The notes below the pieces were generated by a model. It was not told the origin of the DNA. It made no database searches and was given only the letters and a program-made list of their open reading frames with translations. A program made the translations under genes and the position numbers. Positions 123 to 7,532 of a DNA stretch of 64,000 nt are shown in pieces. This DNA comes from Blastocladiella emersonii ATCC 22665 (taxonomy: Eukaryota; Fungi; Blastocladiomycota). The stretch is from positions 2,480,001-2,544,000 of the forward strand of contig JANHCV010000003.1 of assembly GCA_025594325.1 (NCBI GenBank), written 5' to 3'. The first letter of the stretch is position 1; every line of letters begins with the position of its first letter.

Positions 123-484
123 ATACGTTTGCTTATTCAAGTCATTTGCGTTTCCTCCTCCGCTTATTGTTGTTGAGAGGGTCAGCGCGCGTTGCGCCAC
201 TCGCACCGCACGATCGCGTTGGTCACCCACCAGCCACACGCGGTGGCCAGCGTGGGACCGAGTGAAATCGCGGCTGCACTCCGCGGCCCGTCCTCGCTCT
301 CCCACCCGCTCATTTGCTATGTAATTATTTTCCATGCTGCTTACGGGACACCGTGCGGACTCAACTCGGAGGCCTGCGGTCCATCACGCAGCGCCAGTCC
401 CGACTTTGACACGCAAACCTTTGCTCAGCACACCTCGATACCGTTCCCGCATAATTGTCTGCCGACGCGGACCACGCCCGCACC

Positions 485-617
485 CAGGGGCCGGCATCTT
501 CAAAAAGCCACCGGATTGAACCCGACCCGAACGCCCTGCCTGCCACTCCTGTCAACGCGTCCAGTCGCGTCCACCGCGCCGCGCCTCGCCTCGCTCGCTG
601 CTGCTCCTCTCTTGCTC
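485..617 (+). repeat. Left terminal inverted repeat (starts CAGGGGCCGGCATC)
   Basis: Reverse complement of 4060-4192 with 3 mismatches. Confidence 0.95.
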
Positions 618-715
618 GGAAAGCAGACGCCCACATGATCGCCCATGAATGAAGAAAAAACTTCTTGCAAAACATGAATGCAGCTCGTCCCTCCTTGTTC
701 TGACCACTGGTCACT

Positions 716-3700
716 GCCGGAACTTCTTCGCGCCGTGGATGGCCCGGTTCGGCGGGGCGATGGTGAGGCCCTGCGCGGCGAGCCGGAGGTCGGCCGTGGG
801 GCCAGAGTCGGTCCGCGCACGCTTAGCCTTGCTCGCGGGAACCTCGCGCCCCGTATCGATCCCGAGTTGCATCCGGGCGGTCAAATGCGTCTGTATCGCG
901 CGGTAGTGCTTCGAGCCGGGCCCGTTCTCGCTCGTGGCCTTGAGCGCACGGGACTTGACCTCGTCGACGGGTCGCGGGGACAGATAGAACCTGTTCGAGC
1001 GCCGCCCGCGCTTCCGCGTCGCCGCCGTACCGGTCTGCGGGGGGCTGGTTCTCGCTCTGCGCGGTGGTTACGGGCTCGTCCTCATCCATCGACTCGTCCT
1101 CGTCGTGGTCCTGGACCGATCCGGGCTCGTGCTCGCGCATGACGACGTCGTTGTCAGACTTGCTGCCCGCCACGTACTCCTCGGCGTCCGTGTCGCTGCC
1201 GCCGTCGCCCTCCCCGTACGACATGGGCATTAGCGGCGCGCTGACACCGTATGCTGCGGGGGCGGACGTGCCACCGTGCACGCAGGCCGCGGCTTGTCGT
1301 CCTCCTCTGTCGGCGCGTTGGCGCACAGGAACCAGAGCTCGCCGTCCTTCTCGGTCAGCTTGGGGTCGCACAGGTTGCCGAAATCGTCGACGTAGACAGA
1401 GGGCTCGTATGCCATGTTGCTGTACCCGGACTCGCAGGCCGCCGCGTGAGTTGCAGCATCGCTAACCGCGAGCTCGCTGGCCGCTCCTCGGCCCGCTCGC
1501 CGTCACGTCAGCTCGCGTAGCTGGAGCGACGGCTCTGCACGAGCGTCGTTTACCTGAGCTCCTCGGCCGTTGCGAGGTTTTGTCGCTTCAGTTCATCTTG
1601 CTTTGCCACCATGATCGCAATGTCGGTCGCTGCGCTGAGCCGGATCCCGCGGCCGTTGCGCCTGCCAATCGTCTTGACCGACGAAAAGTAGCCCTCGACC
1701 GCGTTGGTGCTGTACGCGCGCAGGTTGGCCCACAGCTGCTTGTTCTCGTTGACCGTGCCTATGCCCGGAGCCATGTTGATGAGGAACTCGACCGACTCGA
1801 TCATCATCATATACCCGACCGACGTGTCAAAGTTGAGCCCGGTCTCGCCGTCGCGCTCCTCCTCGGTCGGTCTGGGTGACCCCTCCGCCGCCGCCCCGGA
1901 CTTTCAGCACATCCGCGTTGTCCTTGAGCGCGTTGATCACGTCGGGCTGGATCAGGCGCATCGCCTCAGCCTCGTTCTGCGTGTTGCGCTTCTCCCATTT
2001 GCTGTTGTACGGACCGCCCGGATGGAAGATCTCGAGGCGGCGCAGCACGCTGCGTTCACCATCGACCCGCTTAAGTAGCGCTGGATCGAGCGTCGCGCGC
2101 ACCTCGGTGGGGATCGTGGGCACGGGCGCCGTCGCGTCGCACGTCGCAGCGAACCACTGCGGAACCGCGCGTTTCGCAAGGTGTGAGTGGTCGATGAGTG
2201 GGATGAAGGCGCGGCGTACCCTCGGGACCAAGGCCCGAATTGCCCCAGTAGCCGCCGCGGATGTTGGCTCCCTCGCGGGCGAGTATATCCATCATCGCAT
2301 CGGCCAGCAGCTCGACGACGAGCTCGCGCACTTTCGCCAGCTTGCTGATCTCCGTCGGTACCCCGGTGTTCTTGCCCGGGCGCAGCGAGTGCTTGAGCGA
2401 GGACACGCGACTTGTGCTCGATGCAGGCGGGACTCGGCCGTGGTGCGCTCGCGCCGTCGCCATGGTCATAAGCAGCGCCTGCGCGATGGCGGCCTCGAAC
2501 TCGGCGACCTTCTCGCCAAACGACGAAGTTGTGTCGAAACCGTTGACGGGCGACACGGCGGGCAGCGCAACATCAGGAGATGGGGTCGGGTTGGGTCGGC
2601 CGCCCGCGCCAATTGGATGGAGCATGGACAGCTTGGCCGTCTCGAAGTTGGGCCGAGCCAGGACAAGAAACCGTATCATCTCGGGCAGGGAGAGGACCTT
2701 GAGAGCCCCCGACCGCAGCTTCATTGCATTCAGGACCGCCCAACACTGCTTGGCAAGTCGGGACGGTGTAGTTAGCGAGAGTAGTCCGAGTCCATGTGGC
2801 CCAGACATGATGCCGGCCGCAGCGGCCGCGGGGTCGTCACTGAGCTTCAGGCCCACGTGCGAGAGTTGGAGCGGCGTTTCGCCCTTGAGGATGCGCTGGT
2901 GTGCGACCGAATCCGTGTAGTTCACCTCGATGAAGCTCGAAAACGCGCCGTCGTAACTATACAACACGAGAATTACGTGTGAGTGAGCATCCAGCGCGGC
3001 AGCAAGGTGAACGCGGTGAGGCTGCACCCGTGCGAGTTGACGATCAGGCCGCGATTCCTGCACTCGATGTCGAGGTCCTGCAGCATCGAGAGCGTCGCCT
3101 CGTTGGGCTGCGTGCTGTACACGAGTAGCGGAGACGCGCTGCGCCACAGCGTGACCTGTGATTGACTCTGCGTCGTGGCTGCGCCACATCTCTCATCCCC
3201 GTCCGCCTCGCCTTTCGACGGGTTTCGCGTGGAGGAGACTGGAAGCACAGCGAGACCGACTGTTCTTGTACACAGAAAGCCGGTTTATATGGATATGTTA
3301 CACAACACAAGCACGCGCCGCCGTCACACACGCTCCCTCCTTCGGCGGCTCTTGACCACGCTTGGCCGCCAAACCAGCCTGCCGGGCGAGCCGAGGACGA
3401 GCACTTAGGCCACGCCATCATTGTCGCTCCCCCAGTCGTCTTCATCCGCGTTGTTGCCCAAGTCGTACGTCCTCCTCGCCGTTTGACGCGGAGTCGGCCG
3501 TCTCCTCCTCCTCCCCGAGCTGCATGAGCTCAATCTCAGTGAGGTACCCATGGAACTGGTGCAATTAGTCGGTGGTGTCCTCCATGGCAAACTCGAAGCA
3601 CTCCTCGTGCAACGCCGCGCCCCAGTCTTCGCGCGCGTAGTCGATGGTTGCAAACCCGCGGGCGCGCACCGCCTCGATCATCACGTTGATGCACGCCCGC

Positions 3701-3900
3701 GCCTCGGGGTCGTGCAGTGCGGGGCGCGCCGAATCGAGAGTGTTCACATCCTCGTGCATGCCCCACTTGGCGAGGCTGACGATCAGGTTCGCGCGGCCGA
3801 TGGGCCCTGCAGGTCGTGGGAGCGCACAAGGTACAAATCCTCGCTGCGAACCTGCAGCAGGTACTGATAGTTTTTTTTCAAGTCAGAAAGTTGTATGTTT
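716..3900 (-). pseudogene. Frameshifted, intron-containing P/THAP9/Galileo-like DDE transposase; boundaries approximate
   Basis: Motifs occur in the expected order across several frames: RGLIVNSHG|YDGA (D at 2950-2952), FIPLIDHSHLAKR (DxxH, D at 2190-2192), RNTQNEAEAMRLIQPDVINAL, and STNAVEGYFSSVKTIG (E at 1694-1696). First catalytic D not located. Confidence 0.65.
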
Positions 3901-4059
3901 GCTTCATCATGTTCTTCACCGAGTGCATGGGGGCGGGGAGAGTGAGAGTAAGAGCTCGAGCAAGCGACGGCGGGCCACTTGAAGCATTGGGCGGCCGATG
4001 CCCGCTGTGGCGATGACGTTGCCCATAGTCGGAGATGGCTTCATGATCATCATTTTCCA

Positions 4060-4192
4060 GAGCAAGAGAGGATCAGCAGCGAGCGAGGCGAGGCGCGGCG
4101 CGGTGGACGCGACTGGATGCTTTGACAGGAGTGGCAGGCAGGGCGTTCGGGTCGGGTTCAATCCGGTGGCTTTTTGAAGATGCCGGCCCCTG
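4060..4192 (-). repeat. Right terminal inverted repeat
   Basis: Reverse complement of 485-617. Confidence 0.95.
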
Positions 4193-4201
4193 GCCCGCAC
4201 C

Positions 4202-5875
4202 GTCGCCGGATCGCTACATGTCAGCGACGGTGCGTCTCATGGTCCTCGGGCGTCGCGCTGAGGCCGATCACCAAGCTGGTCAACTCGCCGCTCGACTTCA
4301 TCCACCTCATCCTGTCCCTCAACTCGACCTGTCGCACCGCTTCTTTTCATTCGACCTCGAGGCGCTGTCCTACGTCCTCGGTACCGAGGTCCTCAACGCC
4401 GACGGCACGCAGCTCACCCACAAGGTCAACGGCGTACCTGTCGCGCCCAAGGGTTCGTCCGACCTCGAGCGCGCCCGCTCCGACCTCGCCTACTGGACGG
4501 CGCTGCTCGACCTGTACGCGGCTTCGTCGATCCGCGCATCCCGCGGCGCGACGGCCCCGGCGGCCCGCACATCAACCAATTCCAGGGCCGCATCTCGACC
4601 GACGGCCATGTCGTTCGCGTGTACCTGTACAAGGGCGGCATCCGGCCAAGGGCGGACACGGTCGGGGGCGGCGGTGACGAGGAGGAGGACGAGGAGGGCG
4701 CCGGCGGCAACACGGTCAAGAAGGTTGCTGGCAAGAAGAAGGCCGGGACCAAGACCACCACCACGGCCACCACGGGCGGGCGTCAAGGGCGTCGCTCCAG
4801 GGACAAGTTCGACAAGACGTCCGCGGGCGTCTCGGTCGACGGCGCGGGCGGCCTCACACTCGACCAGGTGCTCGCCGAGGCCGACAAGCTCGCGCCCCAT
4901 GGCTCGGTCCAGGTCCCGATCCCGGGCGGCCGTGACAAGATCGAGTCGCACAAGAAGAAGATTGTCGTCCGCTACGGCCAGCCCATGTTCGTCATCGACG
5001 CCGGCGTGCGCGACTTCCTCACCGGCTTCCTCGTGCCGTTCGAGCTCGCGCGCCTGTTCCGACGGCTCCAGTACCTCGCGTACTTGGCGGCTGAGGGCGG
5101 CGACGGCCCGTGGTCCGAGGTGCTCAAGGCGTACATTCGGTCGGCGATCTCGCGCGTTGTCCTGACTCGGCCGCTGTTCCGGTCGCTGTCGAGTCGCGAG
5201 TTCCACCACCACGTCGGCACCGACCAGGCCCGCGAGCAGCGCAAGGCGTCGCGCGTCAAGGCGGGCCTCGTACCAGGCGATGCAGCGCACTCGTGCGTTG
5301 CCGGCGACCACCGCGCGGTCGCTCGGGTCGCCACCAAGTACATGGAGGCCAAGGTCGAGGAGAGCTGCAGCCACGGCGTGTGCAGCACCAAGTTCACCAA
5401 CGAGGGCCGCCGCAAGGCGTACTGGGCCGACCTCGCCCGCGCGCTGCGCGGCCACGTCGTGCTCATCGGCCGCAACTTCTCGGGCTTCGGCATGATCTCG
5501 GCGGCCGACAAGGGCCCCGTGGTCGAGATGGTCAAGGAGCTGCGCTCGCGCGGCGTCACCGTGTACGCCGTCGACGAGAACTTCTCGAGCAAGTGGTGCG
5601 CCGCGTGCGCCATGGCCAACCCCGCCGCCGCCAAGGCCGACAAGACCAACCTGCTCGGCAAGAAGAACAAGAAGGTGTACCAGACGCGCGCGTGCCGTCG
5701 CTGCGGCGTCCGCGTGCAGCGCGACCGCAACGCGGCCGTCAACATCCTCTCGTTCGCCATCAAGCAGCTCGTCTTCGAGGACCAGGCCAAGGACGCGGAC
5801 GGCAACCCGCTGCCCGCCGCCCGCCCCAAGCACCGCTACCACCGCAAGCGCCGCACCACGCCCACGGTCGAGTAG
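4202..5875 (+). CDS. Fanzor1-type (TnpB-derived) RNA-guided nuclease; 5' part frameshifted or disrupted, 4520-5875 fully open
   Basis: FQGRISTDGHVVRV (WED-type TDG motif). RuvC-I FVIDAG (D 4997-4999). VLIG with Gly at the canonical RuvC-II position, and displaced E in VDENFSSK (5576-5578). Zn finger CAAC/CRRC. RuvC-III RDRNAAVNI (D 5723-5725). Upstream RFFSFDLEAL and YWTALLDL blocks lie in another frame. Confidence 0.85.
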
Positions 5876-6110
5876 TGCAAGCCGTCCTTACCCTCCTTCC
5901 CTCACCATCCACCAGCTGGGTTGGAGCGTGTGACACGCATCGTGTCCGCACGTCCGTGCTTCCCTTGCCAAGACCACGAGCACGCGCTGTGCTTAGGAGT
6001 CAGCGGCGGGGCGGTGGCTCGAATAGTAGCAAGCGAGCTCAGCTGCGAGGTGCCCTTGCCCTGCTGGGCCGGGTGACCCTCGTTCGGCCGCATCGTCGGC
6101 CGGTGCACTT
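5876..6110 (+). ncRNA. Candidate omegaRNA scaffold of the Fanzor locus
   Basis: Lies directly 3' of the Fanzor stop. Stem-loops at 5932-5946, 5948-5959, 5979-5993, 6017-6038, 6047-6081 and 6085-6102, then an abrupt AT-rich tract. Position fits known TnpB/Fanzor architecture; expression not shown. Confidence 0.45.
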
Positions 6111-7532
6111 TACCTCCAATTTTTGTTGTTTGATTGTAAATATGCATAGGCTGCGGGAATGAAACTGTGAAACTGAAATATGAAATAGAGCGAGAGCGGC
6201 TCGTCGTCGAAATCGCGACCACCAAGTGCGAGGAGTTTGACGATGGCGAGGCCAACGTCCTTGCCAACAGCTTGGAACCAGCTCGGGGACATGTGCGCGC
6301 AGCAGCAAACCGCGCATTTCTTAGAGCGAGAACACAGGCAAAAGCAGGCACTTTTTGAACAGGAAGAAGTTCTTATTTTTCTTAGCCCTTGGCAACGCCG
6401 CCATCCGGTGCCGCGAGCGGGCGATTCCGCCGCCAGCTCGCGCGCGCGCGAGATTAGGTCGGTCATGAGGATCCGAAACATGATGATCGCGGATCGATCG
6501 CGCGCACCGGGTCGCGCTTCCGCTGCTGCACCACTCGCGCGGGTAGGGTCCCTCCTCGAGCAGGGCCACCCGCCCGCACGCGCGCCCACCCCGCCCACCC
6601 CGCCGCCCGCGACCCGCACAGCCAGCGGCAGCGACCGCACACGCAACGGCGGCGGCCGCCCCGAAGATGGCGCGCCTTGCGCGAGCGGACCGCTCGCGCG
6701 GTTGTTGAGGACGACGGCGGCGATGATCGCGACCTGGACCAGGACGTGTTGGTGCGGACGGCGTGCTAGAGGAAGATGGGCGAGGAGAGCGGTGAGTCGG
6801 CGATCCGAAGAGCGAGCTTGCGCGAGTAGATGGGGACGTACGTCAAGGATCACGAGCGGGTCGAGCGAGCTGGGACAGACGAGCGACGTGTCGCGGCGCG
6901 GCAGCCATCTACACGCAAAGGAGAACGCGATCCGTTAGCCGGTGGTCGTGGCGAGCGAGCGGTCGGCGGCGGGGCAGCGTACCGTGAAGAACGCCTGGCG
7001 CGAGCGCGCACGGTTGCGAGGGAGTCCTGCGGCGACGTCTACATGGTTGGTGGTCAGCACGCGTGGCCGCCGTTTGGGACTCCATGAGGGCATGTACCAC
7101 TCGAGCATCGTGGTGGGCGAGGGCGAGGTGAAGAGCGCGAGATGGGTGAGGGCCGCGGTCGGCTTTTATGTCCGTGGCCAGCGACCGAGGCGGGCAGCGG
7201 GGCGCGGTGGGGCGCGGCGACCACCGCGGCCGTGCGCACGGATTTCGCAAAGGACCGGCGAAGGACCCTGGGCAAGCGGGCCGTGTTGCGTCATCGTGAC
7301 GTGAAGGAGCAGGGCACCCGAAGTCGCGCGCGCGCTCGCGCTCAAGCTGCCGCCGCGCCAGCCCGCGGGCGTTTCAGGCCGCGCCGCCTCGCGCAATTCA
7401 CGCGCGAGGCCGCCGCTGCGCACGCTAGGCACCTCAAAGGATATGGGCGGCCTTTCTCCGCCTTGCTCCGCCGCACGCGCCGCGGCGGCAGCGCTTCGCC
7501 CAGGCAGCTCCCCCTCAGTTTTCTTAAGATTC

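Follow-up and report, generated by a model that had tools for sequence, protein, structure and literature searches.

A probable defective copy of a multicopy Fanzor1-like nuclease element in the fungus Blastocladiella emersonii

Fanzors are eukaryotic RNA-guided nucleases that are under development as compact genome editors. A 64,000-nt stretch of contig JANHCV010000003.1 from Blastocladiella emersonii ATCC 22665 (the window, by which the whole of that stretch is meant) carries on its forward strand 451 uninterrupted codons at 4520-5872, closed by a stop at 5873-5875. This locus raises the question of whether the open reading frame (ORF) is part of a working nuclease gene, since an earlier note made from the letters alone had described it as a Fanzor1-type RNA-guided nuclease with a complete RuvC triad, in a fungus of probable blastocladian type. 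The evidence reviewed here indicates that positions ~4256-6150 are very probably a defective, non-autonomous copy of a multicopy element for a Fanzor1-like, TnpB-derived RuvC nuclease, found so far only in Blastocladiella. The encoded protein is a divergent new member of an enzyme type already known from fungi and not a new kind, as Fanzor1 has been known since 2013 (from Allomyces) in the Blastocladiomycota, the phylum of both Allomyces and Blastocladiella.

The forward frame is taken to be the real one because of the periodicity of its GC content, which is 0.67/0.49/0.94 at the first, second and third codon positions. The third-position value (GC3) compares with 0.90-0.94 in the long window ORFs with host-like codon bias, in agreement with the host-like composition proposed earlier, and the long residence that had been deduced from it is plausible. 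An antisense ORF of 450 aa (window 4490-5842, minus strand), in which the first codon positions have a GC content of 0.93, is a by-product of the sense-strand GC3 bias, not a gene. The only above-threshold Pfam match of the forward ORF is to PF07282 (Cas12f1-like_TNB; E 8.5e-10, 39.1 bits against a cut-off of 26.3), and the motifs of the ORF are not considered to be chance because this match lies well above the cut-off. The Pfam and structure matches together show the RuvC fold with zinc ribbon (TNB) of the TnpB/Fanzor/Cas12 superfamily, and the hidden Markov model search thus upholds the assignment of the gene to the RuvC nucleases of this group.

The open stretch and every motif that the earlier note had listed are borne out, and within the ORF they are arranged as in Fanzors. 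The motif of Bao and Jurka, D-X(125,275)-[TS]-[TS]-X-X-[C4 zinc finger]-X(5,50)-RD, is reproduced, with D160 followed 195 residues on by S356-S357-K-W-C360, then CxxC...CxxC, and five residues before R401-D402. A non-acidic residue, Gly317, occupies the canonical RuvC-II position and the alternative Glu, E353, follows 36 residues downstream, which is the arrangement of the Fanzor clade; in the Cas12f1 alignment the position of E353 is taken by Pro. This arrangement had been considered a hallmark of Fanzor1, but the literature assigns Gly or Pro at the canonical RuvC-II position with a Glu ~45 residues downstream to all Fanzors, Fanzor1 and Fanzor2 alike, and to a subset of TnpBs (PMC10530073, PMC10711439). 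The TDG motif of the WED domain, which has been called characteristic of Fanzor1 (Yoon et al. 2023, PMC10711439), is present at ORF residues 27-29. Across the subfamilies of B. emersonii described below, E353, D402, N404 and three of the four Cys are invariant, and G317 and C363 are nearly so.

In the model of the window ORF, two of the three acidic residues end the strands beta1 and beta5 and the third begins the last helix; together with the alignment offsets of D160 and D402 (Table 1), these places lend indirect support to a putative convergence of the three in space. Fanzor1 proteins have an enlarged REC1 and a REC2 made of two kinked helices inserted in RuvC. In the model a helical hairpin (174-193 / 197-215) follows the RuvC-I sheet, and ~84% of residues 364-623 of SpuFz1, the Fanzor1 of Spizellomyces punctatus, align with the model. 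The insert between the WED and RuvC parts is predicted to be disordered (pLDDT <50 over residues 24-118, pLDDT being the predicted local distance difference test) and the TDG region has low local confidence. Every top match from Foldseek / VIA was a Fanzor, a Cas12 or a TnpB, and for two independent models the fungal Fanzor1 structures ranked first, with 218-224 aligned residues as against 171-197 for TnpB or Fanzor2. At the level of sequence profiles, the family profile gave weak matches (E 7e-7 to 0.08) to PDB chains of TnpB, LaTranC, Cas12f, SpuFz1 and mimivirus Fanzor2, and a residue-level alignment through a sub-profile did not recover SpuFz1.

The nearest proteins, at 87-93% identity, are hypothetical proteins of B. 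emersonii ATCC 22665, and the guess at a blastocladian fungus was therefore right. A phmmer search with residues 185-788 of P0002, the protein of the longest copy (locus L001), against 1.84 billion representative proteins gave 16 matches, 15 from B. emersonii and one from an orchid (P0022). The orchid protein was rejected as a relative, its match being a spurious one of low complexity; it was included in the alignments behind both structure predictions. No relatives outside B. emersonii were found by this search or by a profile search of a word-indexed database, and no paper linking Fanzor to Blastocladiella was found in the literature searched. The B. emersonii relatives form several subfamilies that are 22-41% identical to the window ORF, and RuvC-I reads DAG in the window subfamily and DPG in most of its sisters. 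Fanzor2 is the cargo of IS607-type elements with a serine recombinase (PMC3627910, PMC10711439). No Pfam resolvase domain is listed for the called genes of the family loci with gene tables, so that no recombinase of the IS607 kind is seen close to them. The structure ranking, the TDG motif, the lack of a listed resolvase domain nearby and the occurrence of Fanzor1 in Allomyces favour a Fanzor1-like protein on grounds of sequence and modelling.

Among the sister subfamilies, P0013 (L006:4001-5920) is a single-exon, uninterrupted Fanzor1-like ORF of 639 codons, 36% identical to the window ORF and with a confident RuvC/NUC model, and is the best candidate for an intact member in the data set. At two other B. 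emersonii loci, P0017 and P0018 (the latter up to 1055 aa) have a common Cys-rich N-terminal extension, which looks like a fusion of a Fanzor with an extra N-terminal domain. A gene at L007:301-1527, lying ~2.5 kb upstream of the Fanzor-like P0014 on the same strand, has a weak match to a Plavaka transposase (PF18759) and may be a transposase partner of the P0014 subfamily.

The copy in the window is damaged in two ways. DNA homology with L001 begins at ~4256, and P0002 residues 272-344 match window 4299-4517 at 82% identity in a different frame from that of the ORF (tblastn). The start at 4202 given by the earlier note is only the edge of a neighbouring transposon with terminal inverted repeats (TIRs). 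At least P0002 residues 190-271 are absent, a region conserved in sister subfamilies too, and a single base is missing immediately upstream of the ORF (Table 1). An uninterrupted full-length reading frame is thus not found in the window copy, in which the region before ~P0002 residue 272 is gone and the 1-nt deletion breaks the frame. The public gene model H9P43_003692 (P0007, KAI9184637.1; 535 aa), which maps to this locus, places residues 1-107 on 4218-4538 and residues 103-535 on 4574-5872 in a second frame, and joins the two frames by an annotated 50-nt intron. The counterpart of that stretch in the paralogues is in-frame coding sequence and includes an N-x-F-x-G motif just before TDG that is conserved across subfamilies. 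Because a base is missing and the paralogues code across the skipped stretch, the intron is judged from the sequence to bridge a frameshift and to be an annotation artefact. Short introns in the models of P0002, P0004 and P0007 (at L001:6001-8676, L004:5001-5983 and window 4536-4585) all coincide with frameshifts or deletions relative to paralogues, and these three database proteins are probably conceptual repairs of pseudogenes. The window copy is most likely a 5'-truncated, frameshifted pseudogene, and a functional nuclease is unlikely to be made from it because the N-terminal region is lost and a nucleotide deleted. The motifs of the RuvC triad that had been claimed as complete are all present, but completeness of the triad does not amount to a working gene.

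The state of this copy is that of its subfamily. Ten copies were compared (the window copy, L001-L005 and L009-L012), the genome holding at least ten, and they are 93-97% identical in DNA. All ten end at one 3' point, window 6139-6150, which reads ...TTGTTGTTTGATT(T)GTAA, followed by ATAYGCA in most. The flanks past this shared end are unrelated between copies, and those of six compared copies are unique, without common flanking repeats. At the other side, the limits of nine copies are scattered, corresponding to window positions 4256, 4455, 4499, 4580, 4680, 4772, 4850, 4925 and 5555, and the tenth, L001, reaches further 5'. The family is, or was, mobile, as its multiple copies, sharp common 3' end and unique flanks suggest. 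Not one of the ten amounts to a complete, undamaged gene. The reading frame of L001 switches twice, and its gene model gets round this by an intron; L004 has lost 1 nt, L005 contains an in-frame stop, and the others are truncated. The intact siblings anticipated by the earlier note are hence missing from this subfamily, and an intact ORF is found only in a sister subfamily, in P0013. Pairwise dN/dS (the ratio of non-synonymous to synonymous substitution rates) between copies is 0.33-0.65, which fits selection on source copies while dispersed copies decay.

The reverse complement of the right end was found only at right ends themselves, so that TIRs were not seen, only P0002 itself was found to carry the N-terminal region, and the Fanzor family yielded neither a transposase nor a defined left end. 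At L010 a perfect direct repeat of 14 nt, ACGCACCGCTGCTG (L010:3032-3046 and 4336-4349; 0/200 shuffles), stands on both sides of the copy, exactly at the truncation junction and right after ...GTAA, and has the appearance of a long target-site duplication. At L012 the repeat, GCACCCGG, is weaker, offset and 8 nt long, and seven of the nine truncated copies have no trace of a target duplication. In four public read runs of one sample, which look like DNA, read depth climbs towards the 3' end and loose read ends reproduce the junctions of other copies and show a further junction at 4678; no splice-type joints were found in these runs. In the same runs, word depth over window 6249-6500 exceeds that over the unique stretch 4164-4455 several-fold, and over 6162-6248 it is zero, which may reflect another repeat, or uneven coverage or filtering.

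Between the stop codon and the shared right end lies a conserved non-coding tail. It is 91-95% identical to the tails of four of the copies with variant A (L001-L004), and a second variant, B, is found at L005:7155-7420, L011:4502-4784 and L012:3356-3636. Both variants occur within one coding family of 96% identity. In variant B the middle 140 nt (5906-6045) are replaced or strongly diverged and the last 105 nt are conserved, which suggests, along with the hairpin described next, either recombination between tails or fast evolution under structural constraint. Within the diverged part, one hairpin (5927-5952) retains every pair in variant B, five of them with both partners changed and one with a single partner changed; the remaining helices of the tail are either conserved in sequence or not kept. 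An Rfam search of the tail gave no match. A likeness between the tails of the P0013, P0014 and P0015 loci, apparent in a MAFFT alignment across subfamilies, was discarded, being unsupported by blastn. The compensated hairpin is a modest but real indication that the tail is a structured functional element at the place where Fanzor/TnpB omega-RNAs are encoded, and the tail could equally be a DNA-level transposon end.

Several observations weigh against a Fanzor1-like element with a structured tail. RuvC-I reads DAG, DPG being typical of Fanzors, and the N-terminal REC/WED half is modelled with low confidence (pLDDT below 50-70), even in the full-length P0013. Only L001 extends further 5', and it is itself frameshifted. 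Moreover, total pair retention in variant B is no higher than in slid controls, with one hairpin standing out, and the folding energy of the tail is ordinary (z -0.47).

Three other explanations of the locus have been considered. It is conceivable that the gene works as annotated, with 4536-4585 a genuine intron and the product a shortened active nuclease: with the intron taken out, an open frame runs from Met 4218 to 5875, neither the catalytic residues nor the zinc finger are damaged, and introns are known to have been gained by Fanzor genes (PMC10530073). However, the putative intron is of the GC-AG type and deletes codons that are in frame in the paralogues, including a motif shared across subfamilies, and one missing base accounts for the change of frame. 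The models of L001 and L004 also bridge lesions with introns, and the upstream region of L001 is absent from the window copy, so that a working gene is regarded as highly improbable. That the family is instead a Fanzor2- or TnpB-like lineage, or an independent eukaryotic offshoot of TnpB, is somewhat less remote, but is still unlikely. The similarity to solved Fanzors is weak (E 0.022 for SpuFz with the profile), phmmer found relatives only in B. emersonii, and Gly with an alternative Glu does not discriminate between these groups; against this stand the first rank of fungal Fanzor1 structures for both models, the TDG motif, the lack of a Pfam resolvase among called genes of the family loci with gene tables, and the prior occurrence of Fanzor1 in the same phylum.

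About as improbable is the third explanation, in which a host gene gave rise to the copies by retrocopying or ordinary segmental duplication and the tail is a plain 3' untranslated region (UTR) that ends at a polyadenylation site. It would account for the common 3' end with variable 5' truncation, the unique flanks without TIRs, the 14-nt target duplication of one copy, the host-like GC3 and the sequence TGTAAATA in the element end, which is similar to a poly(A) signal region. Nevertheless, none of the copies has an A-run past its end, seven of the nine truncated copies lack a target duplication, and compensatory changes that preserve a hairpin are unusual in a plain UTR. The same 3'-anchored, 5'-truncated pattern has, in addition, been described for Fanzor1 elements as one-ended transposition of Helitron2 type (PMC3627910). 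The preferred explanation is thus still a decayed copy of a Fanzor1-like element.

If that is so, intact members would produce a protein that binds an omega-RNA derived from the conserved tail and cuts DNA matching a guide just beyond the right end of the element. Cutting would occur at D160, the alternative E353 and D402, beside the C4 zinc finger. The RNA guidance, the use of the tail as omega-RNA and the nuclease activity are inferred from the family by analogy. With regard to spread, a tentative and rather doubtful proposal is that the B. emersonii elements move by 3'-anchored one-ended copying, which would yield 5'-truncated copies without TIRs and with occasional long target duplications, the tail acting both as guide-RNA scaffold and as cis-acting end. 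Such copying could be of a rolling-circle, Helitron2-like kind, or a repair-type process with priming at the right end, perhaps where the nuclease itself has made a break.

The neighbouring TIR transposon occupies window 484-4193 and is an unrelated DNA transposon with 139-nt TIRs that are 96% complementary, bracketed by a 7-bp target duplication, CCCGCAC (477-483 and 4194-4200). It lies outside the Fanzor copy, and the Fanzor homology sets in ~55 bp further downstream. The possibility that its insertion had split off the 5' part of the copy was rejected: the rejoined pre-insertion DNA scored 14 against the upstream region of L001, and shuffles scored 13.9 +/- 1.6. No tblastn or blastn match was found between the upstream DNA and the longest copy. 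As the rejoined upstream DNA has no similarity to L001, the transposon did not split the Fanzor copy, which was already 5'-truncated.

Table 1. Features of the Fanzor1-like copy in the window (positions counted from the first letter of the window).
Feature	Position	Strand	Remarks
N-terminal remnant (putative first WED strand and small REC helices), in another frame than the main ORF	4256..4517	+	
1-nt deletion, a frameshift relative to paralogues	4518..4519	+	Window CTGTACG-CGGC; CTGTAC(G/A)ACGGC in L001 and L002
Main open frame: end of WED (TDG), disordered low-complexity insert, RuvC with helical insertion, C4 zinc finger, RuvC-III	4520..5875	+	
Annotated 50-nt GC..AG 'intron' of H9P43_003692	4536..4585	+	Joins the two frames
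TDG motif, WED domain, ORF residues 27-29	4598..4606	+	Present in most B. emersonii subfamilies
Low-complexity insert, acidic/basic/Thr-rich, ORF residues ~40-135	4637..4924	+	Alignment variable between subfamilies
RuvC-I Asp D160, motif IDAG	4997..4999	+	End of strand 156-161; structural alignment offset gives SpuFz1 D383
Gly317, canonical RuvC-II Glu position, end of strand HVVLIG (motif VLIG)	5468..5470	+	Nearly invariant in family
Alternative RuvC-II Glu E353 (VDEN), between strand TVYAVD and SSKWC	5576..5578	+	Invariant in both family alignments
C4 zinc finger C360/C363/C392/C395, TNB/NUC domain	5597..5704	+	Pfam PF07282; Cys invariant or nearly so
RuvC-III Asp D402 in RDRNAAVNI	5723..5725	+	Invariant; alignment offset gives SpuFz1 D606
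Non-coding 3' tail, 275 nt, stop to shared right end; candidate omega-RNA scaffold and/or transposon end	5876..6150	+	
11-bp hairpin preserved in variant B	5927..5952	+	Structure predicted from variant A alone
Terminal ~105 nt of tail, 75-77% identical between tail variants; hairpins 6046-6082 and 6085-6102; T-rich end	6045..6150	+	

Divergent natural Fanzor families widen the pool of scaffolds, target-adjacent motif preferences and omega-RNA designs that is available for genome editing, and the window copy is itself no editing candidate because it is broken. What is documented is an expansion of strongly diverged Fanzor1-like genes that is restricted to one lineage, in a blastoclad fungus, together with public models of these genes in which artificial introns conceal frameshifts. 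The most intriguing side issue is the 3'-anchored pattern of the copies, as a fixed 3' end, a variable 5' end and one 14-nt duplication bear on how Fanzor elements without a transposase move.

Among known systems, ISDra2 TnpB and Cas12f (PDB 8H1J, 8EXA, 7C7L) have in common with the B. emersonii family the RuvC fold and the zinc-ribbon TNB, and a further, putative likeness is that the right end of the element encodes a guide RNA. They have a canonical RuvC-II Glu and a shorter helical region between the motifs, whereas the B. emersonii family has Gly at that position and the Glu 36 residues downstream. The mimivirus Fanzor2 (ApmFz2, PDB 9B0L) ranks below the Fanzor1 structures, and the serine recombinase of the IS607-type elements that carry Fanzor2 was not seen at the B. 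emersonii loci. Three Fanzor1 families are listed for Allomyces macrogynus (AMa; Bao and Jurka 2013, PMC3627910), but none of the Allomyces proteins was retrieved by the sequence searches, the B. emersonii family being too divergent to be linked by phmmer.

SpuFz1 (PDB 8GKH, 9CEU-9CEZ) resembles the window family in its D/E/D triad with alternative Glu and C4 zinc finger, and likewise belongs to a single-ORF, multicopy element of an early-diverging fungus. The 3' end of that element has a non-coding RNA region, the putative counterpart of the B. emersonii tail. It differs in that sequence identity to the window family is only 12-18%, and the SPu-1 element has TIRs of 30-33 nt and TA duplications, whereas no TIR was found for the B. 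emersonii family. Furthermore, the B. emersonii copies are 5'-truncated, read DAG at RuvC-I and have a disordered insert of ~95 residues between WED and RuvC. With respect to the ends of the copies, a likeness is offered by the Fanzor1 elements CRe-1, CRe-2 and CRe-3 of Chlamydomonas, which are non-autonomous Helitron2 elements with intact 3' ends, often truncated 5' ends and no TIRs (PMC3627910). Target duplications of 7-19 bp occur in part of the CRe copies, and the pattern as a whole has been explained by one-ended Helitron2 transposition (PMC3627910). The ten B. emersonii copies show the same 3'-anchored pattern and one 14-nt duplication, but Helitron ends, a RepHel gene and a TTTT target preference have not been demonstrated for them. 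The CRe genes have 5-10 exons, whereas the B. emersonii copies are without evident real introns and mostly without duplications. The resemblance to Helitron2-type CRe elements may, by analogy, serve as a lead to the way in which the Blastocladiella family spread.

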